Shown: piece after piece, positions 41,838-58,717 of the stretch
Layout: the number at the start of each line of letters is the position of its first letter
Position numbering within the stretch: position 1 is the first letter of the stretch
NCBI GenBank assembly: GCA_000708835.1
Contig: DF237491.1
Span: forward strand, 1-59,499
Length of the DNA stretch: 59,499 bases
Direction: 5' to 3'
Source: Klebsormidium nitens
Taxonomy: Eukaryota > Plantae > Klebsormidiophyceae
Program-made: the position numbers and the translations under genes
Notes under the pieces: generated by a model
Told to the model about the DNA's origin: nothing
Seen by the model: the letters and a program-made list of their open reading frames with translations, nothing else
Database searches by the model: none

Positions 41838-44429
41838 CCTAACTTATTTGTCAAAGACCAGCGTGAGGGTCAGCATACTGGGTCAGAAAGGATCTCGGGT
41901 TTCATTTGATTGGGGTCTGCATATACCTATGCATAATTATAACTCATGCGTTTGGGCTACTCTTGCACTGGGACCGCCTTAACGGCGGAATCGGACCTGG
42001 TGTCAGAGGATTGGCTATACGAGCTGAGCGAGATTTGTAACACTAGCCGAGCCCCAAGTTTTCAAGGGCCTCGCAACTGAGCGGCCGTCAAAACATATTA
42101 AGGAGTGATGCTCCCTGTAGCTTGTAGATGATAGGCGCACCTTGCGCGTTGCATTGCTTCGTTCATCAGCCTCTGACTCTGGTCCATAGCTTGAGAAGGA
42201 TTCATATACGAAGCGTCAAGTTGTAAAGTATAATGGGCCCAGCGCGCTGCGAGACTGAGGTTCCACAGCTTGTGTATCTAAGGTGTTCTGGTTCGCAACC
42301 GACTGTTCAACTCCGACGGTGTCACAACCGTCCCGGTCAGCTTTCTGGCATCGGCCTTGCATTTAGCAACTCGCAACCCATCGAAGGGACGGTCATTTGA
42401 GGTCAGAATTCTCGCACGGCTTGCCGCATTGACAGCTTTCTAGAGTTGTGCTCAGCCGTTCATAATGGGGGCCCCATGCATGTAGATAGATTGATCGGTC
42501 TAGCTGTGTTCGGCCGTGCTGATCGAATGTATGTTAGACATGGTTCGCCAATTCTCAACAGGCCGGAGCATTCCACATTTGAGATTGCGGTACATGTTTC
42601 AGTCACGTCGTGCTTGGAAATGGACATGATCAAAATCGCATCCAGCACTCCGGTCAAATTAGTCGGTGGCGAATCGCCGAGGCGCGCGCGGGGCTTCGTT
42701 TGCAGACGGTCAATATACCCCGGCCCAATGATGACCGTTTGGAAGCAAGAGAATTGCTGCATGGCCCACCGGTGCAGCTAGCATGAAGCAACGGTCAATC
42801 CCAATTGGCAGCTAGCTATAAACGGTAGACATGCACCAAGTGCAGGACATGCCGGGTCGGATATAGTCGGCTGCATGTGAAGTAACTTAATCAGATCAAG
42901 CTGCGACCCTTGAATTTCAGAATGCCTCATGCACTCGATCGAGGCTTCGATCGTATTTTGTACTAAGCTTTACCCTTTCATGATGATCAACCAATGACGG
43001 TATCTTTGTGGCAAATTGTTGAATTGAGCACCTCTTATCCTTGAATATAAAGTAGTCAACACCTCATATAACCCTGCCCTCCAAGATCGCCTCCGTATAC
43101 TGGAGCCGAACGGAGTCGGATTGCAAACTGGGGTCCAACATATCGCTTTCATGCAGTGCGGACATGCCCAGTCGAGGACGGCCCTTCTACAAAAGGAGTT
43201 GGAGTGCGCCGAATGAAGCGGCTGATGTTCTGAGGCTGATTATCGAAGCCGACTTTCATTCTCCCCCCTCCCTGTATTTGCCAGAAGCCTCCAGAGTTAA
43301 GGGACCCGTCTGCTCGCGACGTCCTACTGCTTTGGTTCTATTGACCTGCCTTAGCCAGCGTTTATTGGCCAAGCCCCGTCTAGTTGCTCAAGAGACCTGA
43401 GCAAGAGCCTTGCAGAGACGAAGACGTGATCTTGGGCATTATCTGAGCACCGTGATAAGCATCCTGAGACACGGAACCCTGGCACACTAGTACCGAGTTC
43501 AGGTCTGGCCCTCAAGTCTACAACCGCTCATGATGCCTCCCGCGCGCGCTGCAAATGATTGCAATTCTCATCAACTTGAAGCTCAATGCACACTCGCTCT
43601 TCACGAGAAGCTCTCGCACTTGCGGCGCTGTCATTTGAACGGTCAAATGTTGTCACTTCGCCTCTGAAACTAACCGATAGATCTGATAGATAGCCAGCGT
43701 AATATACAGGTGCTTCCAAATAGCGCTGAAGCGTATTATGCATCGCTTCAACCTGATACCGGCAGTGCTAAGCCGCTTCATATCTGTGTTCTGCCCGACA
43801 GGCACCTGATTGTCCAATCGTTTTGAAGCAGTGTGCCGGCTGACCAGTAAGTACGACAGTAGTAAGTACGACGTTACTGGTGGGACTGTATGATTATGAG
43901 TGGATGTATTAGCATCAGAAAATTGAAGGAACCTGCAACGTCGTACTTCTTGTTTGCATCTCGAGGGCAGCTGTACGAGTGTAAGACTTAGCTCCTTGGA
44001 CCTTTGCTGGACCTTCCTATAATGTTCTGAAGCGAGATGCCGCGTGCGGGCATGAAATCTCCGTCTAGCGCGGCCGCCCTGCGCGGCGGCCGCCAGGTGC
44101 CGGCCGGCCGGCGCGCGCGTTATGCGCAAGTTGCTGGTCGATGGAGACGGCGACCGAGCGTGGTAAACACAGGTGAAATAGTCGCCCCTACCTGGGCGAC
44201 TAGAAGTGATCGGACCTCGGCGTTTACTTATTAAAACGGAAGCGGTGTCGCCAGGTTTCTTGGCGACCATGACATCCATCATCCAAGCTTTGCGCTCGCC
44301 AGTTCACTCATGTATGATCAGAGGGCTCAACAGAATCTCTGCAGCTTGTAATAATTGTAGGGGCGGGGCGGAAAGGTCTTGCTGCATGGGAGTTCAAGAC
44401 CTTTTGTGACACTTCAGCGCTGATCAAGC

Positions 44430-47400
44430 ATGGCGAAGAAGAAAGGTGGCGGACGTGGAGACGATGACGACGAGCACGACGAGGTTGAGGCGGCGGCTGC
44501 AGGGCAGCCTGCAGGTGGTAAAGGCAAGAAGAAGGGGAAGCGGGGGAAGGGGAGGGACGACTTTGATGACGATTTCAAAGTTGAGCCAGAGGAAGGGCAG
44601 GAAGGTCACGTAGCCGACGAGGGCGATGCTAATGAGAGTGTTGAAGGGAGTGCAAAGGGCGCAGTCCCTGCAAAGTCAGCTGCCGGTGGGAAGAAGAAGA
44701 AGGGCAAGAAGGGGCGCGGAAATGATGACTCTGATGACGACTTTGCTGTGCAACCAGAGGAGGAGGAGACCGAGCCTGCAGGTGCGAAGCAGGGGAAGAA
44801 AGGGAAGAAGGGGAAGAAGGGCCGAGGAGACGATGACTTTGATGAGGACTTCAAGGTGGATATTGAGGACGATGCATCTGAGGTTGCTTCTGAGGCCCCC
44901 TCTGCAGGGGGCGCAGTTCCCAAAGGGAGGGGCAAGAAGAAGGATAAGAAGAAGGGGCGCCGGGCGGGGGACTGGAGCGACGAAGATGAAGAGGAGGTGG
45001 CGCCAGCTAAGAAAGAGGCACCTCCTGCCAAGGCCAAAGCTGGCGCAAAGAAGGCGGCGTCTACTTTTGCGCTGTTGAACATTGATGACGAGGATGAGGA
45101 GGATGAGGAGGAAGAGGAAATTCAGAAGCCAGCGGCAAATGGGAAGGCAAAGGGTGGGGCTGGGAAAAAGGCGGTGTCGTTTGCTGCACTTCAGGACGAA
45201 GAGAGCGATGAGGAGGAAGAGGTAAGGCGGCGACCATTTATGCTCGCATAAACCCTTACTTATTGAACCCTCACTCTGAGCAACTTTCGGAGTGGTGCAC
45301 ATTTTGTGAGCTTTGGATTCGTTTGGCAATGTTGTGGATACTCAGTGTTACTGCATAGATTATCTGCCTCTACGAGCAGCATCTGCAGAACTTCTTGGCA
45401 TTTTGGTAATGGTTTGCTTGCACGAAAGATCAATCTGGACATTAGATGCTGAGCAGGGTTCAGCATTTCAAGGGTTTCTGAGAGTTTTTAGACATGATCT
45501 GGTGGCGAATGGCAATCTCTAAGAGATCTCTTTGAACCTGGTCCTCATCCTCTATGACGGACCCCTGCATGGATCAGACTGGAGCGCGCATTAGTGCTTT
45601 TCCTCCTTGTGAGGTCCCACCATTGGATATGTTTTTTGTGCTTTGAAAGCGGCCTTTGAAGCACCAATCCCCTGTTGCAGCCCCGCTTCAAGCAGAGACA
45701 TGGACATTGAATTCTCCAGCTTATGGAGGAACTTTCCGCAATTGCGCATTGGAGCTCTTTAGTGACCTTCGAGATCAGAGCCTGTTGTGTTGGTTTCTGC
45801 TTTTCCTATCAAACCCTTCGCAAGCCTTCCCTTTAGATGGGGAAGTATCTGATTGCTCGTTTATTGCGTTCTTTCAGGAAGCTCCGAAACCCTCCAAGAA
45901 ACTGAACGGTTTCGCCGGTTTATCGCTGGAGGATACAGAGGATGACGCAGAACCGTGCCTAGTGGTCGGCGAAATTGAGTCCGTTGAGAAGATCAAGAAG
46001 GCAGACAAGTTGCGGCTGTGCCATGTCAACGTCGGCTCGGACGAACCCCTACAGATTGTGTGCGGAGGGAAGAATGTGAGGGAGGGGTTGAAAGTGATTG
46101 TGGCGCGGGTTGGGAGCAGAATACCGTCAAGCGGGATGCTGATTCAGAAAACCACGATCAAGGGGGTGGAGAGCTACGGGATGATCTGTGGGGCGGCTGA
46201 GATGGGGTGGGAAGGCCCTGCTGACGAGGCGATCGAACTGGGGGATGAGGCGGCAGTAGGGGAGAAGGCGTCGCCGACAAGGCCTCTTCGTGAAGAAGAG
46301 GACGAGGAAGCGGTTTCGTTTTCAGGGTTGAAGAAGAAGGTTGCGCCGAAGGTGGGTGAGATGGAGCAGGGCTCGCATGAAGAGCTGGTGTTTGCAGGGA
46401 AGAAGAAGAAGAAGGGGGGAAAGCCTGCGCCTGTTGTGGAAGACGAGGAGAGCGAAGAAGAAGCGCCGGTGTTTGCGGGGAAGAAAAAGAAGGGAAAGAA
46501 GGAGGCCCCTAAGCCGGTGGCGGATGAAAAAAACGGGGAGGATGAAGAGGAGAGTGCAGTCTTTGCCGGGAAGAAGAAGAAGAAGGGAAAGAAGGCGCCC
46601 TCGGACGATTTTGACAAGGACTTTGAGGTCGAGCCGGAGGTACCCGCTGAAGAGGAGGAGGACGAGGGGGTTGTTTTTGCGGGGAAGAAGAAAAAGAAGG
46701 GGAAGAAAGCACAACACGACTTTGACAAGGACTTTGAGGCCGATGCGGTCGAGCCTGCGGAGGAAGAGGACAGCGAGGCGGTGGTGTTTGCGGGGAAGAA
46801 GAAGAAGAAGGGGAAGAAAGCTGCCCAAGACGATTTTGATAAGGACTTTGAGATGGAAGACAGTGCGGGAGCGCCCGAACCTGCGCCGGTCGCAGCGCCG
46901 GAACCGATGGTTGTGGAGAAGAAGGGGAAGAAGGGCAAGGACAAGAAGGAGGACGAGGACATTGAGGCGCTTCTGGCCCAGTTGGAGGCGCCTAAGAAGG
47001 AGGACGTGAGTAACTTTGGATTGGACCGAATCTGGAAGGAGCGCTTTCCTCCGTCTTGAGATTGCACATTTCTGGCTTGCTGGGGCTTTGCGAGCATCCT
47101 AAGTCACAAAGCCCGTTGAACTTCGTTTTGCCCTTTAGGCTCCTTTTCAGAGGCCAATGCTGTCTGATTTCATATCGGAGCGCTCACTTTTCATTTTCAT
47201 TCAAAAAGTGTGGTTTGAAGGAGCAGAGTGTGTGCACAAACCGTTTGTGTAATAGTTGGTGACAAGTGAAGCAGAACGCACGGGATTGATCGAGCCTGCT
47301 AGCTGACCACGAGCAGGTGAATGCTGCATCGAACGTTGTTGTCTCACTTGATTGTTGGTCACCGCAGGAGGAAGGCGCCGGGTCGAAGAAGAAAAAGAAG

Positions 47401-50400
47401 AAGGGCAAGAAAGGCAAGGACGAAAAGGAAGAGGAAGACATCGACGCCATTCTGGCGGAGCTTGAGGGGCCCAAGAAGGAAGAAGCGCAGCCAGCGCCAG
47501 GTGTTGCGCCTGCTCCTGCCGTTGAGGAGACTGGGCCTTCGAAAGCGGAAGAGGCTGAGCTGTCTGCGGCGGCGGCCGGAGAAGGGGAGGAGAAGGAAGG
47601 GGATGAGGGGCTGTCTGCGGCGGCAAAGAAGAAGAAGAAGAAGAAAGAGAAGGAGAAAGAGAAGAAGTCGGCCGACAAGGTCAGTGGCAGACAGGCTGTG
47701 CGCAACGGAGGCCATTTCGCAAGCTCTAGCCAACCGAAAGTAGTGCTCTGGTGGTGCTGTGACCACCGATTGTTGCCTGTAGTTTTAAGTTCTGTACTAT
47801 CACCTTTCCTGTCTGCTGTTAGGACCTCTCTGCTTCGGTTCTGGAAACGGCAAGCGCGTCACATCTGGTAAGGCTCAAAATGGAGCAGGGACACCAGCCT
47901 GCATGCTGCATTGTTGAATACAGAAACTGCTTGGGGATGCCTCGTCTGATGCCGTGACCTTTTCTCACAGGCTGCCGTGGTTGAGGACGAGGGCGCCAAA
48001 GAGGAGGAGGCGAAGAAAAAGAAGGCTGCCGCGGATAAGAAGCTGCCGCTGCACGTGCGGCAGATGCAGGAGCGGTTGGCCAAGCTTCAAGCGGAGGAGG
48101 AGCGCAAGAAGAAAGAGGAGGAGGAGCGGCGGCGCAAAGAGGAGGAGGTGAGGGGCTATGCGATACCACTTTAGGGTGTTCTAGAGTGCTGTGGCCTGAA
48201 GCCTGAAGATAGGACATGTAGATTCTTAGGTTTTGTTGTTGAGAAGCAATGAGGTCTCCTGGAGAAATACCCTCACCTCAGAGGCGTTTTAGGCTTGGAG
48301 GGTCCGGAAACGAACGGCTTTCGGAGGCCAGAGCTTGATTGTGAGTCCAGATGCAGCGCGTGCCGTTGCTGCAGACATTCGCTTATGTCTGTGACGAACT
48401 GTCAAGCAGTATGTGTGGCTGTATGTGTAGAGTGAGAAAGGTTCCTCGACACAGGTTTATGAGAGTGGCATGCAGTTTGTGTTGGGCCCGTCAATCTTGC
48501 GCTGGTCTGGTGGGTTGTGCGACTGGTTGATTGGCGTTTGTCTGTTCCCTACAGGAAGCTGCCCGGCTGGCTGAGTTGGAACGGCAGAAAGAGGAGGCCA
48601 AGTTGCGAAAAAAGCAGAAAGAAAAGGTGCGTGAGATTGCTTCCAAGCTTGCCTCAGTTAGGTGTTCACGGTTTAGCTGCGTTTGGCTTATCTTAGTTTG
48701 ACACATCGTTTGCGCGCCTGTTGCTCAAATCAAGATTACTCCTCTTTCGTCTCCGCTTCAGTAGAGTTGTCAGTCCCAACCCTGCTTCTGTAGTTTCAGC
48801 CTACTCCCTCTTCTGTAGCCCACGGTGTCCATGTCTTTACGATTGTACGAAAGTCCTCGTTTGCCGTTCGTTCTGCACAAGTCGGTGTGCCACTTGCCTA
48901 TCCCGTCTATTCACCACATGTCTCGTTGGCCATTCCGCAGGAGAAGCGCGAGCAGCTGAAGAAGGAGGGCAAGCTGCTGACGGGCAAGCAGAAGGAGGAG
49001 GCCAAGCGGCTCGCAGCGGTGCGCGAGCAGATGCTCAAGCAGGCAGGGGTGAAGCTCGACGGGGACGAGGCCGCGCCCAAGAAACAGAAGGTAAGCGGGA
49101 TGATACAGAGCATCGGCGGGTTGCATCTTCTTCCTGTGAAACCCGAGACAGTCGTAAATCACTGTATAGTACCCTTTTGGTGATCAGGCAGTGTAGAGCT
49201 GCGTGGCTGTCGGTGCGGCATTGTGGCGTCTGAGCTTTGTCTCACGGACTAAAGCTGTTTCTGTGCGCTGTTGATGCACGGGGTCCAATCGTGATTGTCG
49301 ACCCAAATTGCGTTCACTCCAACCAATAATCCTTTGAGTGAACGGTGTGTTTCGTTTGGTGTGGTATGCCAGTGTACCTTTTTTTGTAAGATCCGCCCGG
49401 AGTTTTAAGATCTGAACCCGATTTCGCCGCACAGGTGGTGTACGGCACCAAGAAGTCTCGGCAACCGTCCAAGCAAGCTGCGGAAGCAGCGCCCAAGGAG
49501 GTCTCCCCGGAACCGGTGCCGGCCCCCGAGCCAGAGCCAATGGAAGAGGAGGCGCCGGTAAGCTGAAGTTTCTTTACATTCACAACCCTTTGCTACAGTT
49601 GTGGGCTGCAAGATTCGGGGCGTCTGTTGCAAGTTGCTGTGAACAGAAGCTCCAAAACCTGTTTGCTCTTGCTCTGCAGTGCTTGTCATTTGTTGCAATT
49701 GTGTGATGATAGGTTTGCACTATAGAAAGCAGCCTCGAACGGGCTTACTAGTCAAGACCGCTCTGTTTGCATTCTCAGTCTCATGTGCATCTTCAGCAAC
49801 CCCTTTGCCCGCCGTTGTACTTCCCCGCTTTCGTCCAGCCCTTCCGCTATTTGAGGACTCTGTGCTGATCCTTCTTCCACGTGCATTAAGCCTGGGATAA
49901 GTAACAGTCTTGCAGGGCCCGGTGAATTTGCTGCACGTAAACAAAATGGGCAGGAATAGTTGGTCAATGGGCGCTCAATCTGCGTCGTGTCGACATGCAG
50001 GAGCCTGTCCAGGAGGAGGTTCCGGCGGAGAAGGTCCCCGAACCCCCGGCAGAGGAGGAAGAGTCGGAAGAGGAGGACTGGGATGCCAAGAGCTGGGACG
50101 AGGCAGAGGTTGACAAGACGCTCAAGAAGACGGGGGCGTTCAGGGACGAGGTGAGGGGCGTGCAGTGGCCGGCAATCAATCAGGATCTGCGCGGTTCAAC
50201 TTAAAGAGGGACGCCGGACTACGTTGCTGTGGATTATGCTGGCAATATTCTGCAGAAAGGGAAGACTTCGGGTTTGATTGTATCCCGAGAGAAGCTGGGT
50301 GGTAGCAGCTGCTTCTGCTTTGGACGGATGTCTGGTCTCAGCAAGTGCAAGTAGCCTGTTCTTCTCCTTTACTGCTTGCCTTTGAGGGTCCAACCTTTGA

Positions 50401-53400
50401 CACTCTGTGCACCCCAAGACATCAAGTTGCACATTTGTGTACGTTGTGAAGATCGTCCCCCTTGCTTCAAGGAAAACGGGGTGCAGTTGTACCCCTCTGT
50501 TATGCCTAGAAGTCCTCATAACACCTGGTGCCCTATGCTGCGCAGGAAGAGCACGACACCCCCGCACGCGTCGCTTCTCCAAAGCCCGCCAAAAAAGAAG
50601 AAGCCAAACCGGCGAAAAAAGACGAGCCCGCCAAGCCCGCCGCCAGCCGGCCGGCGATCCTCCACAAAGCAGGGCCCCGGAAGCAGCCGGCCGAAGAATC
50701 TTCCTCTGACGAAGAAGACAGCGAGACCGAGTCGGAGGAGGAGTCGAGTGAGGACGAAGTAGACGAGAGGAGGAGGGCCGAGGCGCGCAAGCGGCGGGAG
50801 GCGCGGATGAAGGAGGCGATGGCGAAGCGGGACGAGAACGACCTGCGGTCGCCCATCTGCTGCATCTTGGGCCACGTGGACACGGGCAAGACGAAGCTGC
50901 TGGACCGCATCCGAAATACCAACGTGCAGGTAACGAGGCGATTGTATGGTTTCAGGTTGCTAGTATGCTCCGATGAGACTAGTGTGCTGCAAAGCGAGGG
51001 ACGGACTTGGTTAATGTGAGAACGGGAAGGTTGTGGTGCGCATCAGGACGATTGGCTGGTTCCGCATCTCAAATGAGGAGCTTCACGGGCTTTCGCTTCT
51101 ACTTCCCTTCTGGTTCGGCACCTGTCCAGCCGGTTTACGATTCTTACTTTCCCTGGGCCTCTTTACCCGCGAGGAAAGTGAAGGCTCCTCCTTTGTCTTT
51201 GTCTTACTCACGGTATGCTATTTTGCTCTGGTCGTACTCACGGTATCTCATGTTGCTCTTGTACAGGAAGGCGAGGCTGGGGGTATCACCCAGCAGATCG
51301 GCGCCACCTTCTTCCCGATGGACGCCATCAAGGAGCGGACCAAGGAGCTCAAGTCGGATGCAACCCTCAAGGTACGTGTCGATTTCTGGGTCATAATGAG
51401 CAGTGCAATTTGCCTCTTTTCGGTCCTGTTGGCTTGCGTGGATGCAATGCTACTTCCTTTGACGACTGAGGCCGAAGTTCCGTCTCTGTCTATTATGTAG
51501 GTCACTGACGAACGGGTAATTATGGTCTTCGGGTGCTCGAGATTTTTCGTCATTGTTTAGCCTCACGACTTTTCGTCTGCTCGTCTGTCTCCCTAGATCT
51601 GTTATTAGGCAACCGAAGCCAATCTGCTTCTTTGAAAGCGTTCACTCCTTCCTTCCCACGTAGTTGTGCTTCCAGCTGGCAGGGAGTTCCTTCAGCATCC
51701 CTCGGTGCACACTTCTCTGTATAACAGTCCTAGCCGTCACTCTCTGACAGGTTCCCGGGCTGCTCATTATCGACACGCCCGGTCACGAGTCGTTCACGAA
51801 TCTGCGGTCGCGCGGGTCCGGCCTGTGCGACATCGCCATCTTAGTTGTGGACATCATGCACGGCCTGGAGCCGCAGACCGTTGAGTCGATCAACCTGCTG
51901 AAGATGCGCAAGACGCCCTTCATCATTGCGCTCAATAAGGTACGTTAGTCGCTGGATGCAAGGGAGTCGCGTTTGAGTTCTTGTGACAAGTATTGATGCT
52001 TATCAAGCTGACTGATAGTGGAAGGAGGAGTCAGAGGTCGCTAGTGTCTGCTCACTGAGCTGTTCGTTTTCAACTGAGAAAGTTTTTGGAGCTTGCCAGT
52101 CTCTGCCATACACACCCTGTGAAACAGCATGTGAATGCAACTTCTCAAACATCAAGCATGATTGCAGGCTTGGTCCTGCACATCTCGGAAACAAGTACAG
52201 TAATAAAAGCTTGCAAGCTGCTGTAGATTGAGCGCCTTCCCGGTTTGGTCTCGCGCTCCCCTCGCTGTTATCCGTATGATACCCAGTTGCTCAAGCGTGT
52301 TTGTGGCCGTTGCCAGGTGGACCGTCTGTACGACTGGAAGGTGCAGTCCAACGCGCCCATCCGGAACGCGCTCAAAATCCAGCCCGAGCACGTGCGCAAG
52401 GAGTTCGACCAACGAGCAGCCGAGGTGAGGGCAATACCCTCTGAGTTGAAGAGGAACTTTGACATGGGTCACAATAGTCCGTTTTGGCTCACGTTGTAAT
52501 GCTTTCGAGTGGTTTAAGGAGGCCTCTGAACATGCACTACGTGAAGGCTTTGCCACTCTTTGAGTCACTGTAGTATGCACAATCCGTCTACCTTTTGGCG
52601 GACTCTGTCATTGAATCAGTAAAAGCGTCGACGTGGGCTAGGATGGAGCGAAACTTACGAACGCGCACCTTTGATCCTTGTTGATCAGCTCAATCCAGAA
52701 TGAGACAACTTGCCTGAGACAAGTGGGGTCAGTAGGGTGGGTTAGGTGGGACATGGGTGTGGAGCAGGTAAAATCTTCGGCTCTATTATTTTGTGTGTCA
52801 GCTTTTCTACTATCATAACTTGAGCTTATCTTGACTGATTTAGAGGATTGTCTTTCTTTTCCCCGTAGGCGATTGGGATGCTCCAGGAGCAGGGCCTGAA
52901 CAGCGCGCTGTACTGGAAGAACAACGACCCGCGGCGCGTGATCAGCATCGTGCCGACGAGCGCCATCAGCGGGGAGGGCATCCCGGACATGCTGCTGCTG
53001 CTGGTGCAGATGACGCAGAAGATGATGAGCGAGAAGCTCATGTTCCTCTCCGAGACGCAGGTCAGTCACCCAGTTTAGCGTAACCTGGGTTTAGCATGTT
53101 TGGGTAGAATTGCGGGGTGGCAATGGTTGCAACTGACAAGGCTTTTGTTTCTTTTGAAAGTTGATTCAGCACGAGCCTTGGGGACCGTTTCAAAACGCAG
53201 GTCAGGCGCCCTGCTTGTCATAGATGGTCGGGGGGCACTTCTTTTGGCACATGGCTACTTCTCGTGTAAAACTTTCAGACGTGCAATCAAAGCAATATCT
53301 CTGAGAATACTCCCTCTTGAGATTGTTCGAGCTCGGTCAATTTGTGGGGGAGCGAAGTTCCTACGCCAACTGCCTGTTGGGATGCTGTGCTCAAGGCGAC

Positions 53401-56400
53401 GCTGCCCTTTGCTTAAAATCAGTGACCTTCGCGCAGATAACTTTGCAGCTTGCCGACGTTAAATGAAACTCTACTTTTTCTTTCGCCGCATGACTGAACC
53501 ATTGGCTCTGGCAGCCCGTCACGACAGCATCGTCTCAGTTCCCAGCGTTCTTTCTTCACTTTGCAAGACACGGTGTTGAGGGGGAAAGTGATCAGGGGCC
53601 CGGGCAGTGCGACTCTTGGCAAGAGCCTTTGGAACTTACCGTTCACTCGAAGAGTCGCATGCATGAAGCTCGTGTATGTTTCTTTTGCTGTCCACAGTGA
53701 TTGAGGGGAAGACGGTCGAGGATCCGAGCAGTCCGATCCTTCTACAGAAGTTTTCCAAGACATTTGCCATTTCAACTTTAAAATAGTCTCAGTAGCGGAA
53801 TCCCGCGTGTTTCTCCGGCAGTGCACGGTATGGAAGGTAAAGGTAATCGAGGGCCTGGGCAGGTCGGAACCTTTCGAACACCACTACCTTGATCTAAAAA
53901 GATCTCACCAAAGGGTCTCACAATTTCCCATCCCGCAGTGCACGGTGCTGGAGGTGAAGGCCGTTGATGCCTCTGGCAGGTCGACTTTCGCACAAAAAGC
54001 TTCTGAAGCCTCCTCCTTTTTGGAAAATATAGCCCACAGGTCGTTGATTGTTTCTTCCCTCGCACAGTGCACGGTGCTGGAGGTGAAGGTGATCGAGGGC
54101 CTGGGCACGACGATCGACGTGGTGCTCGTCGACAGCAAATTTCAAGGCGTTTGCAACTTTCAAATTGAGGACCGTCCAGTGTTGACATCCCGCGAGTTTC
54201 TTCTGCAGTGCACGGTGCTGGAGGTGAAGGTGATCGAGGGCCTGGGCACGACGATCGACGTGGTGCTGGTCAACGGCAAATTTCTCACACACTTTTGCAA
54301 CTTCCAGTTTTAAGTCAGTCTCAGTACTGACATCCCGCGAGTTTCTTCTGCAGTGCATGGTGCTGGAGTTGAAGGTGATCGAGGGCCTGGGCATTACGAT
54401 CGACGTGGTGCTGGTCAACGGCAAAATTCTCACACACTTTTGCAACTTCGAATATTAAGACAGTCTCAGTACCAACCTCCCGCGTGTTTGTTCTGCAGTT
54501 ACACGGTGCTGGAGGTGAAGGTGATCAAGGACCTGGGCTGTTTGTATGCTCTCAAACATCATCAACGGAACTCCGTGTTTTTCCTCCTGTGCAGTGCACG
54601 GTGCTGGAGGTGAAGGTGATCGAGGGCCTGGGCACGACGATCGACGTGGTCCTGGTCAACGGCGTGCTCCACGAGGGCGACACGATCGTGGTGTGCGGCC
54701 TGCAGGGGCCCATCAAGACGTCCATCCGAGCGCTGCTCACGCCGCACCCCATGAAGGAGCTCCGGGTCAAGGTGAGCGCGGTAGACCTCGTGCTTCTGTT
54801 GTATGCTCGTTCAGGGTTCGGCTGGGGCTCTAGAACCCTACCCGTAAATCAGTTTTTGCGCACTGTCTGAGCTCTTTACGACATTGGTCGATGGCGCCAA
54901 AACCCGCTTCTTCCACCTAGGTCGCTTGGATTTTGCCTGAGGTTGTCAAGTACCCGACATAAAACCCTCGCATCTCTTGATTGACCTTGCTGTCCTGATT
55001 GAACCGAGGCCGAATCTTGCATTCAAGAAGGTATCCCGGAACTTGCATTTCGGCTGGACCCAGTATCACAGAAAGCGGCTGCAAAGTAGAAGAGCCCTCC
55101 ATTCTTTGAGCACTTTCCTTGTTGCAGGGGTCGTACGTGCACCACAAGGAGCTGAAGGCCGCCCAGGGGATCAAGATCACGGCGCAGGGCCTCGAGTCCG
55201 CGGTTGCGGGCACACAGCTCTACGTGGTCGGACCCGATGACGACGTGGATGACGTCATGGACGAGGCGATGCAGGACATGAACAGCATCCTGTCGCGGGT
55301 GGACAAGAGCGGCGAGGGCGTCTGTGTGCAGGTAAGCGCCCGGCAAAAAGTTTGGCGCCATTATTGTAAACCCACCCATCTGGGACGAGCGGGCACCAAA
55401 TCGCGGAGTCTCGGATCGAGAAGGTTATGTTATTATGAGTTCAAGTGGGCCACGCGCTAAAAGTTTACATGTTCGTGACCCTGCCTTCGGCATGCTAGAT
55501 CCTCTGTATTTCCAAGAGCGTTTGGACCTTTAAGTTGCCACGTACAACGGGGCTGTTGGAGAGCCCTTGATTCGGACGCCGCTTTCCAAAGCTTCGCCAC
55601 CCAGTTTCGTACAACGGCTCTCTTTTTGGAGCCTGTGGAACTGACCGAAAGCTCCCGACCGCAACATCTCAGTAAAGTGGTCGAATCGAAGGCTTGCTAC
55701 GACCCTCCTGTTCCGTCTACGTCATAAATGGCCCCCGAAAGGCACTGCTGGCTTTCTATTGCTCTAGATTCAGCCGACTCTTTTTACACACATCATTGAG
55801 CTGTTCTTTAAGCCTTTGTTCGGGCGTCCACTTGGGTCAGTTGGGTTGGCTTAGGAAGCTCAAGAAACGGGGTGCCAACACTCATTCAGCGGAGCCAACT
55901 CTGAATCTGGTCAGTTCCTTTCTACTCTTGACCACGCCTAAGCTCCCCTCTTTCTTCAATCCCCAGGCGTCCACGCTGGGGTCCCTGGAACGGCTGCTGG
56001 AGTTCCCCAAGCTCACAAGATTGAACCCCGAATCTCCGCCGTTGATTCTATCAGCGGCTAACTTTAACTTCTTTCTTCAATCCCCAGGCGTCCACGCTGG
56101 GGTCCCTGGAAGCGCTGCTGGAGTTCCTCAAGCCCACAGAAACGAACCCCGATTTCCCCTGTTGATTCTTTACAGCGGCTAACTTCCGATTTCTTTCTCT
56201 TTACCCCGTATTAGGCATCCACGCTGGGGTCCCTGGAGGCGCTGCTGGAGTTCCTCAAGAGCCCGGACGTGAACATCCCGGTGAGCGGCATCAACATCGG
56301 GCCCGTGCACAAGAAGGACGTGATGCGCGCGAGCGTCATGCTGGAGCGCAAGCGCAAGGAGTTCGCGTGCATCCTCGCGTTCGACGTGAAGGTCACGCCC

Positions 56401-58717
56401 GAGGCGCGCGACATGGCTGAGGAGCTGGGGGTCAAAGTGTTCACTGCGGACATCATTTACCACCTGTTCGACCAGGTGAGCGGGCGGTGCAACACAGCGG
56501 AAGTTTCAATTGGCAATGGATCATCCGGCAACGTGTTTCCTTTCTTAGGGGGTGTTGCAAGTCAGGGTATGCTTGAAGGGTATGGTAGGTGAGTGGCCAA
56601 TAGGGGATGTTGCAAGTCAGGGTGTACTTGAAGGGTATGCTAGGTGAGTGGCCAATAGGGGATGTTGCAAGTCAGGGTGTACTTGAAGGGTATGCTAGGT
56701 GAGTGGCCAAGAGAATCTGCGTCGCACATCTGAAAGTTTTGTTCGCTGAGCCGTGTGCCGGAATTGTGGATCACAGTGTGGGTTACAGTCTTCTGTTACG
56801 TGCTTCCGGGACGAATATCTGAGGCTGGTTCGTGCTGCACACTTGCGGCATTCAGTATCGGGTCCGCAAGCAGCCAGCACTCGTGCATTTACTGTTCTCT
56901 CGGGTCTCACTAGGGCTCCCCCTTCAAAGGGGCAGTCTTCCGTCTAAACCGTTCTCGGCTTAATATCCCGCTTTTTGGCCAACAACCCCCGACCACGTAA
57001 CCCGGCGCAATGTACAGTATTCCCACTCTCCAGACCGTCCCAAAGCGTCAGAACCACCCAAGCCGTTCGTAGCTCGTCCGAAACCCACCTGGAAACTACA
57101 GGACTTCGCAAACTAGCAACAATAACTTTTAGCAATGGTTAGTAAACCAGGCTGCGACGGGTGAGGTTAATCTGGGGGTTTAGGGTGGGTACGAGTGCGG
57201 AGCAGGCGGATTTATGGGGTCAGCTTTTGGCGTTAGTGGAGAAGCTTACAGCTTACTGATGGTAAATCGAAGACACATGGAAACCCTTTGGTTTGCAGTT
57301 CACGGCGTACATGGGCAACATCAAGGCGGAGAAGCGCGCGGAGGCGGCGGAGGACGCGGTGTTCCCGTGCATCCTCAAGATCCTGCCGCAGTTCGTCTTC
57401 ATGAAAAAGGACCCCATCATCCTCGGCTGCGACGTCGTGGCCGGTATCGCCAAGGTGAGCGAACAACTTATAGTAAATGTCCTTTGTTTCATCGTTTGCA
57501 CGTTGGACTCTGGACATCCGGGACATCTGCATGCTTGTTCTGCCCCCTTCTTTTTGGTTGGACAACTGCTGGAAATGCGCGTTCTTGCAAGGCAAGGGAT
57601 TTGGGGGGGCCGCGCTTGTTAGTCTGCTCTTTACTCAACACCCTTTCTATCGAATGGTCCGGTTTCGTGTTGAAAATGTTTAGGATTCTGACCTTACTCG
57701 CTCTCGCAGGTCGGCACGCCCATTTGCGTCCCCTCGAAGGGCACTATCGACATCGGCAAAATTGCGTCCATAGAAATGAACCACAAAGCGGTGGATACAG
57801 CCAAGAAGGGCCAGAGCATAGCGCTCAAGGTATGCAAACGACACTGCTTGGAAAGTTTGAAGCAAAAGATTGAGCTGTAGCTCACTCCGGGGCTCGGTGC
57901 ACGCGTAGGTTACAAACGGAGGGTACGAAAAAGTGATTACAGTGGCTATCCCAGCGCTTTTCTTTTGCCAGGCGGCCTCTGTGATAGATATCTATCGTTT
58001 TGCTTTTTTGGCCCAATTGCCAGCTTTTGGTGGACTTTTCGACAGAATGTCTCAGCAAGTCTATGTCTGGTTGCTGGCATCGAATTAGATGGTTCAGCAA
58101 CTTGCTTTCTAACTTCCTCTGCCGGCTCGATAAGTCGCTGGTGATTCGTCCTTTGCTGTTGTCCCAGTTGCCCCCTCAGACTGGACATTGTACCGTATAC
58201 TCACCTTGACCGTCGCCGAGAGCCTTCGAAATTGATTTTTCTCGATCACGGGGCGTCCCCAGAATTGTCTGCTTTCATCCCCGCAGATTCAGAGCACGAA
58301 CGCGGAAGAGGCGCAGAAGATGTACGGGCGGCACTTTGACAAGGACGACGAACTCGTGAGCCACATCTCGAGAAAGAGCATCGACCTCCTTAAGGAGAAT
58401 TATCGGGTAAGTAAAAGCTGTCCGGATTTTGCCCTTTGCATGTTGGGAGCTTCTGTTTGAGACGATCTGTTGCTGGATGGTTGCGGAGTGCAAGTCTTTT
58501 TGATGGTTATCTTTTTGCCCTTGGCGCGCTTGTTCATGATTGGCGAATCAAGTTCTTGCACGTTACCAGTCCAGACAGCATATAAATTGGGAGCAAAGAA
58601 TGTCGTTGGCATAGCATACCGTAGGCTGTGACGATTATCTGCATTTTGCAGGACGACCTTACTAGGGACGACTGGATGCTCGTGGTGAAGTTGAAGAAAA
58701 TGTTCGAGATCCAATAG
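44430..58717 (+). CDS. EIF5B: Eukaryotic translation initiation factor 5B (IF2 family GTPase), 20 exons, about 1661 aa, with an extra tRNA-binding OB fold in the N-terminal region
   Basis: Exons 44430-45221, 45878-47005, 47368-47679, 47971-48147, 48555-48626, 48941-49090, 49435-49557, 50001-50150, 50546-50929, 51267-51371, 51751-51939, 52317-52424, 52869-53060, 54595-54771, 55128-55331, 56215-56475, 57299-57454, 57710-57829, 58287-58406 and 58652-58717. Motifs: [111 protein letters not shown]-terminal [15 protein letters not shown]. Confidence 0.97.
45956..46250 (+). other. tRNA-binding OB-fold domain (bacterial PheRS beta B2 / YtpR / Trbp111-like) encoded within eIF5B exon 2
   Basis: [84 protein letters not shown] matches the recalled PheT-B2 pattern VVG.V......ADKL....V.VG.....IVCG..N...G..V.VA..G..LP....I....LRG..S.GMLCS..ELG. 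Confidence 0.88.
53569..54540 (+). repeat. Tandem array of duplicated intron-end plus exon-14-start units in eIF5B intron 13
   Basis: Copies of cag|tgcacggtgctggaggtgaaggtgatcgagggcctgggca... start at about 53822, 53939, 54068, 54209, 54354 and 54499. Degenerate copies lie near 53569 and 53694. The functional exon starts at 54595. Confidence 0.92.
55940..56214 (+). repeat. Two duplicated intron-end plus exon-16-start units in eIF5B intron 15
   Basis: ctttcttcaatccccag|gcgtccacgctggggtccctggaa..gctgctggagttcc has exon-like parts starting at 55967 and 56088. The functional exon (tag|gcatccacgctggggtccctggaggcgctgctggagttcc) starts at 56215. Confidence 0.9.
56546..56710. repeat. Tandem repeat, 3 x 55 bp, in eIF5B intron 16
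   Basis: The unit taggggatgttgcaagtcagggtgtacttgaagggtatgctaggtgagtggccaa occurs three times; copy 1 is slightly diverged. Confidence 0.92.
57157..57206 (-). repeat. Short dispersed intronic repeat, copy 2
   Basis: Its reverse complement matches 7522-7570 at 45 of 50 positions. Confidence 0.75.

Follow-up and report, generated by a model that had tools for sequence, protein, structure and literature searches.

Is a tRNA-binding domain truly part of a eukaryotic initiation factor, where did it come from, and what might it do there? The question is raised by a stretch of 59,499 nucleotides of Klebsormidium nitens DNA (NCBI GenBank assembly GCA_000708835.1, contig DF237491.1, positions 1 to 59,499 of the forward strand), called the window in the following. 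It holds a gene for the translation initiation factor eIF5B, whose second exon encodes a tRNA_bind domain of the OB fold. An earlier note on this DNA, made from the letters alone, had taken the domain for a bacterial or endosymbiont-derived module that was grafted onto the factor and that might capture or channel initiator tRNA. We find that the OB-eIF5B combination is an old inherited architecture and not a Klebsormidium novelty; the gene described here adds the Klebsormidium branch to it. The explanation that overall accounts best for the data, and to which we assign a probability of roughly 60%, is that the N-terminal region of eIF5B contains a folded tRNA_bind OB domain which was inherited and which would serve as a tethered binder of tRNA ends.

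The gene model comprises 20 exons, extends from 44430 to 58717 (+) and encodes 1661 amino acids (aa) without an internal stop codon. Its parts are listed here with the evidence in brackets; L001 denotes a 73-kb metagenome contig of a related alga.

44430..45221, + strand: exon 1, with the start codon and 264 aa of the charged N-terminal region, F-A-[AL]-L motifs followed by acidic runs
45878..47005, + strand: exon 2, with the OB domain and then K/E/D-rich repeats (AG/GT borders conserved in the relative L001)
45959..46264, + strand: tRNA_bind (TRBD) OB-fold domain of the PheRS-beta B2/YtpR subtype (Pfam, NCBIfam, AlphaFold, Foldseek, substitution rates)
46562..46852, + strand: 111-nt tandem coding repeats within exon 2, DDFDKDFE units included (Tandem Repeats Finder: period 111, 2.6 copies)
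47368-47679, 47971-48147, 48555-48626, 48941-49090, 49435-49557 and 50001-50150, + strand: exons 3-8, charged linker, phase 0 (GT-AG borders, L001 alignment)
50546..50929, + strand: exon 9, in which the charged region ends and the G domain begins with GHVDTGKT (joint in an RNA-type contig, translation)
51267..58717, + strand: exons 10-20, the eIF5B core (G domain, domain II, IF-2 domain, domain IV) up to the stop codon

All 19 introns are of the GT-AG type and in phase 0, and the length of every exon is a multiple of three, in line with the earlier claim that exon 1, exon 2 and the eIF5B exons are joined at canonical phase-0 sites. Exon 1 starts with the first in-frame ATG after a stop. The similarity to L001 begins at 44429, the ratio of non-synonymous to synonymous substitution rates (dN/dS) of this exon against L001 is 0.09, and the N-terminus that follows from the ATG is similar to that of a Closterium eIF5B (P0155). 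Exons 1-8 and most of exon 9 contribute about 1070 aa of K/E/D-rich sequence, and the G1 motif GHVDTGKT stands at the end of exon 9. Exons 9-20 then encode, in the order that defines eIF5B and within one gene, the G domain with GHVDTGKT, domain II, the IF-2 domain and domain IV. The core of the model is 78% identical over 604 aa to Closterium eIF5B (Pfam: GTP_EFTU, D2, IF-2, D4).

Exon 2 consists of 1128 nt, codes for 376 aa and is in phase 0 at both ends, with AG at 45876-7 and GT at 47006-7. A scan with profile hidden Markov models (HMM) found an OB-fold family in it, as had been proposed from the letters: PF01588 (tRNA_bind) matches exon 2 residues 28-129, that is positions 45959-46264, in frame, with an E-value of 1.9e-19 and 69.9 bits at a gathering cut-off of 27, covering profile positions 1-95 of 96. 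In the 1661-aa protein the domain takes up residues about 283-395, and charged K/E/D repeats flank it on both sides. Among the NCBIfam models YtpR (3.1e-33) and bacterial pheT (6e-32) come out on top, while the C-terminal models of MetRS are far weaker. The YtpR model NF045760 scores 115.2 bits (cut-off 100), yet only its profile positions 75-184 of 185 are aligned; the N-terminal YtpR half is absent, and the product is not a two-domain YtpR. Likewise, TIGR00472 (pheT_bact) scores 110.8 bits, below its cut-off of 402.65, with only profile positions 29-151 of 798 aligned, and the full multi-domain PheRS beta (B1-B8) is not present. Sequence matches in the PDB are to bacterial PheRS beta chains, one YtpR-like protein and one weak hypothetical protein; no domain of the Arc1p, EMAPII or Trbp111 type was matched there at E 0.01.

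The fold prediction agrees with this assignment. An AlphaFold model built on 28 homologues consists chiefly of beta strands (predicted local distance difference test, pLDDT, 89.9; predicted template modelling score, pTM, 0.81), and the predicted domain is a five-stranded OB barrel. When the model was compared with known structures by Foldseek, YtpR and the B2 domain of PheRS beta ranked first, with template modelling (TM) scores of 0.80-0.84 and a root-mean-square deviation (rmsd) of 1.3-2.1 Å, followed by a second tier of Arc1p, EMAPII, Trbp111, MetRS-C and CsaA at 0.63-0.68; the Foldseek probability is 1.0 for YtpR, PheRS B2, Trbp111, Arc1p and EMAPII. By sequence and by predicted fold, the nearest kin of the domain are YtpR and the B2 domain of bacterial PheRS beta. 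The PDB matches and the two tiers of TM scores thereby uphold the subtype given in the earlier note, which had placed Arc1p and EMAPII further away.

The relationship to these known systems has two sides. The EMAP II-like B2 domain of PheT is 42-50% identical to the window OB, superimposes with a TM score of 0.80-0.82 and an rmsd of 1.3-1.6 Å, has equal length and shares the A-D-K-L and G-V-x-S-x-G-M motifs; here, however, the OB is a single domain, its host is an initiation GTPase and not a synthetase, and the eukaryotic copies form a group of their own with a GW signature. YtpR (PDB 3bu2, 9a77_B) gives the top fold match (0.84) and the top NCBIfam model (115 bits), but only its C-terminal OB half has a counterpart. 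Arc1p, AIMP1/EMAPII, the C-termini of MetRS and TyrRS, and Trbp111 belong to the same PF01588 superfamily and have the OB fold, but they are distant (0.63-0.68), the host here is a GTPase initiation factor, and position 75 of Trbp111 is not kept.

The only close match among 1.8 billion representative proteins is an open reading frame (ORF; P0001, 81% identity) on L001. Nucleotide similarity between L001 and the window is limited to the predicted exons, usually to within a few bases of their borders, and the introns cannot be aligned; exon 2 has kept its splice sites (CAG/GAAGCT ... GAG/GTGAGG, with the slash at the border). Between the two genomes the OB has a dN/dS of 0.10 at a dS of 1.16, and the other N-terminal exons range from 0.007 to 0.30, with 0.03 for exon 3. 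Judged from these substitution rates, the OB and all N-terminal exons are under purifying selection. Recent horizontal transfer or contamination was considered as well and is ruled out, as the OB exon lies inside a spliced, intron-rich gene and is conserved in the second genome and across algal classes. Additionally, we note that the exon borders are the same in L001 wherever L001 aligns to an exon end.

A local graft does not survive a look at other algae. A profile search led by a long protein as its first row, thus admitting long candidates, yielded full-length proteins with PF01588, PF00009, PF11987 and PF14578. According to precomputed Pfam lists, 13 protein clusters combine PF01588 with the core families of eIF5B. 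IF-2 is listed in all of them except a 1573-aa Trebouxia model (12/13), for which only GTP_EFTU and domain 2 are given. The OB and eIF5B stand together in Ostreococcus tauri (RefSeq XP_022838602.1, OB at 133-227, 60.7 bits), Mantoniella antarctica (UniProt A0A7S0SPN1 and an MMETSP transcript), Chloropicon roscoffensis (WZN61363.1), Trebouxia spp., Closterium sp. NIES-53 and NIES-54 (CAI7893108.1 among the Closterium entries), a desmid-like Logan transcript (1751 aa on a 5413-nt contig), several marine picoalgae, and finally a Scrippsiella-labelled group (MMETSP0270, dinoflagellate label) together with a EukProt transcript. In these proteins the OB lies 13-380 residues from the N-terminus and about 450-1000 (mostly 500-800) residues before the G1 motif, and it is 37-55% identical to the window OB. 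They differ from the gene described here in being orthologues of other lineages, and none comes with an entry name or a paper that mentions the OB. Our gene model is collinear with the full-length algal eIF5Bs. Several of the fusions are complete ORFs on poly(A)-type transcripts (MMETSP, EukProt) or on Logan contigs barely longer than the ORF, which shows that the OB and the GTPase are on one mRNA in those species.

The tree of the eIF5B core follows the species tree: the window is sister to Zygnematophyceae plus land plants, a place that suits a klebsormidiophyte, and the chlorophytes fall together, with the Scrippsiella-labelled group on a long separate branch. Because OB-eIF5B is found in Chlorophyta and in streptophyte algae, the architecture predates their split, and the fusion is very probably ancestral to the green algae. 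As to whether the architecture is already widespread and described, the answer is divided. It occurs well beyond Klebsormidium and is visible in public protein databases, and a keyword search of about 8.4 million papers and preprints found no description of an OB-eIF5B fusion. In a 2026 preprint on extensions of IF2/eIF5B, which covered 12 eIF5Bs, helical termini are the only ones described.

For the origin of the module itself we turned to a tree of the OB domain, a quick, unrooted tree of 117 columns with few bacteria sampled. The bacterial rows are PheT and YtpR of cyanobacteria, proteobacteria, Bacillota and Bacteroidota, taken from a genome scan among the matches listed. A split with a support of 98 in the Shimodaira-Hasegawa-like approximate likelihood ratio test (SH-aLRT) sets 20 eukaryotic OB rows and one long-branch bacterium apart from 85 bacterial rows, and the window OB groups with the other algal eIF5B OBs rather than with bacterial copies. 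Forcing the eukaryotic OBs together improves the likelihood, and their monophyly is not rejected by the approximately unbiased test (p-AU 0.745). In an alignment of 28 sequences the eukaryotic OBs have a tryptophan in common (E[ML]GW); the bacterial ones read ELG[LI] at this place. A single acquisition of the eukaryotic copies would fit these sequence data. The eukaryotic copies are not nested in the sampled cyanobacteria or alphaproteobacteria; a bacterial or endosymbiont donor, as first suggested, is possible. A cyanobacterial (plastid) origin had been considered for Synechococcus being the top genome match among those listed; the tree gives it no support, the eukaryotes not being nested in the cyanobacteria.

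A further observation concerns the same OB clade. One transcript-like contig (L003:3-4212; JGI sample 3300017250, Ga0186120_100187) encodes an ABCF-type ATPase with two ABC_tran domains and ABC_tran_Xtn, and its product P0002 carries three tandem OBs of the eukaryotic clade after K/E/S-rich repeats. Between the ABCF and OB parts the contig has a run of N, and the reading frame changes there. If the join is real, this would be a second translation factor that recruited the eukaryotic OB clade.

The listed land-plant eIF5Bs, by contrast, have no OB. With the canonical factor of yeast, animals and land plants the Klebsormidium protein shares the core of G domain and domains II, III and IV (76-82% identity to plant cores) and a long, lysine/glutamate-rich N-terminal region. 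The canonical N-terminal region, however, has no folded tRNA_bind domain. For land plants, in agreement with the earlier note, an HMM of the eukaryotic OBs gave no match at E <=10 in any listed eIF5B, and the listed sequences range over liverworts, mosses, lycophytes, ferns, gymnosperms and angiosperms. Of the 120 eIF5Bs nearest to the core of Closterium, only those of Closterium and the desmid-like transcript have PF01588 in their lists. The gene model SM000001S04473 (P0220, EukProt, 1726 aa), which groups with Zygnematophyceae, also gave no OB match at E <=10; here we are dealing with either a second loss or a gap in the gene model. The simplest reading of these sequences is that the OB was present in the green ancestor and would have been lost before or at the origin of land plants.

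What could the domain do in eIF5B? In the structure of Trbp111 with tRNA (2024), the single-stranded 3'-terminal CA of the tRNA is held in a pocket that uses S82 and M85, and Arc1p grips the 3' CA end likewise, with an arginine at the F78 place (PMC11286949). Every well-studied and tested member of the superfamily binds tRNA, and the fusion of this OB class to enzymes raises the local tRNA concentration (PMC11286949). The pocket residues of Trbp111 are K33, R75, I77, F78, S82 and M85, and loss of R75 hurts tRNA binding most. With equivalences to Trbp111 taken from motif spacing and not from superposition, we find G-x-x-S-x-G-M invariant in 28/28 aligned OB copies (G-V-E-S-Y-G-M in the window OB). 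The F78 place is taken by K/R in most rows, as in Arc1p, and by glycine in the dinoflagellate-labelled group.

By analogy, the algal OB would be one more case of a tRNA binder of low specificity that is attached in cis to a translation enzyme, as are the appended tRNA_bind domains of the synthetases and of Arc1p (PMC11286949). It would bind single-stranded RNA ends, above all the 3' CCA of tRNA, with modest affinity and low specificity. The N-terminal region around the OB is presumably long, charged and disordered, and on such a flexible tether the domain could keep tRNA or tRNA-loaded ribosomal complexes at a higher local concentration near the eIF5B core, whose domain IV holds the acceptor end of Met-tRNAi. 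On its tether it may thus bind tRNA ends or other RNA with low specificity and so help eIF5B to meet tRNA-loaded complexes. Taken for itself, the step that the OB works through binding of the tRNA 3' end is one that we put forward only tentatively.

Several points weigh against the tethered tRNA-end binder. That eIF5B-linked OBs bind tRNA is an argument by analogy. By motif spacing, the window OB has Thr at the place of R75, where Arc1p has valine, and this strongest determinant of tRNA binding in Trbp111 is not conserved. In PheRS the anticodon is read by domain B8, and B2 is described only as EMAP II-like (PMC3275996). YtpR, the closest free-standing relative, has been reported in complex with a protein partner, GatB. 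In the Thermus PheRS complex B2 is not known to contact tRNA, and the N-terminal region of yeast eIF5B is dispensable. The reading of the anticodon by B8, the YtpR-GatB complex and the altered R75 place would also suit the main rival explanation, in which the OB belongs to eIF5B but has given up tRNA binding, having been re-used as a module for protein or other RNA (rRNA, mRNA, a partner) or as a folded spacer. The eukaryotic tryptophan signature E[ML]GW, which hints at a new surface, speaks for it too. Such re-use is nevertheless rather unlikely, given that the S-x-G-M pocket and A-D-K-L are among the most conserved positions across all OB copies and that all well-studied, tested members of the superfamily bind tRNA (PMC11286949).

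We therefore stay with the inherited, tethered tRNA-end binder, and it can be extended. Green-algal and some protist eIF5Bs might use the OB to hold the 3' end of a tRNA, initiator or deacylated, in an IF2-like recruiting or a charging-sensing role that was abandoned by land plants, the same OB clade having been recruited independently by an ABCF ATPase. In this full form the idea is speculative and we think it quite unlikely to be correct. The more general consequences are of interest on their own. Most accounts of eIF5B take its N-terminal region for a disordered tail that can be dispensed with, and here it contains a folded domain of the tRNA-binding type. Green algae have kept this domain under purifying selection and land plants have lost it, which suggests that translation initiation has a lineage-specific layer not represented in what is known from yeast and mammals. 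tRNA_bind domains are known to be appended to synthetases; this habit would now include a translational GTPase and perhaps an ABCF factor. Finally, Ostreococcus tauri, which is genetically tractable, shares the architecture and offers a directly testable handle.

In Klebsormidium, too, the OB is very likely part of eIF5B. An RNA-type contig from one run joins 50148/50150 to 50544/50546 with GT..AG ends, so that the exon 8-9 joint is seen directly. Of the 31-mers sampled from 44400-51100, a share of 0.41-0.51 occurs in each of 23 transcriptome-sized runs (8 studies). The expected share is 0.45 with all nine exons and no intron, and at most 0.29 without exon 2, from which we conclude that those assemblies contain exon 2 free of introns. 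The comparison with L001, with its similarity confined to the exons, weighs more than these RNA data. Moreover, exon 3 has no ATG and intron 2 measures just 362 nt, so that translation of exon 3 needs an upstream start, and the ATG of exon 1 is the only start with conserved context upstream of exon 3. Two points stand on the other side. Over 44960-50950, where coverage is poor, four runs gave no RNA contig or read across the exon 1-2 or exon 2-3 joints; the pieces placed there were almost all 20-nt low-complexity matches of other transcripts. In addition, conservation of the frame cannot prove that the exons are connected, because every exon is in phase 0. Low-depth contigs at 47121-47391 in two runs lie in intron 2 and cross its border with exon 3 (depth 2.5-2.7, compared with about 196 for the exon-spanning contig); they are either unspliced pre-mRNA or DNA traces.

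The OB could still be an optional cassette, with regulated skipping of exon 2 producing eIF5B isoforms with and without the module. The earlier note had drawn attention to the symmetry of exon 2, and indeed the exon is symmetric and the frame would be kept if it were skipped. As evidence for skipping this carries no weight, since the other 19 exons are symmetric as well. In RNA coverage too poor to judge, no joint that skips exon 2 appeared, and in the reference protein of the intron-poor Ostreococcus the OB is constitutive, so that we regard a cassette as improbable. That exons 1-2 are a gene in their own right, coding for a small charged OB protein and lying head-to-tail upstream of eIF5B, with the fusion existing only in gene models, might be argued from the missing junction-spanning RNA and from an in-frame join that could arise by chance among phase-0 exons, but it is very improbable indeed: no stop codon precedes the conserved donor of exon 2 and reading on past it gives different tails in the two genomes, the 362-nt intron 2 is not conserved, exon 3 is under strong purifying selection although it has no ATG, and the OB and the GTPase form one ORF both in poly(A)-type transcripts (Mantoniella, the Scrippsiella-labelled culture, a EukProt species) and in Logan contigs of 4.2-5.4 kb.

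Some smaller observations concern the structure of the gene and its N-terminal region. If about half of introns are generally in phase 0, the chance of finding this phase in 19/19 introns is well below 1e-5. Two sequence motifs come up more than once in the N-terminal regions of eIF5B from this alga and from chlorophytes (45030-45200 and 45905-45930 in the window; L004:2683-2990; the N-terminus of P0160): the short [ST]-x-F-A-[AGL]-L with an acidic run behind it, and D-E-D-I-E-A-L-L-A-x-L-[ED]; both may be linear motifs for partners. Intron 13 contains about 3.3 tandem units of 145 bp (54065-54538), with degenerate copies from about 53700, and each unit carries a copy of the acceptor and of the first ~70 nt of exon 14, a piece that is single-copy in L001. 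Intron 15 similarly holds 2.5 units of 121 bp (55949-56259) with the start of exon 16. The repeat units of both introns are decoy acceptors or partial exon duplications.

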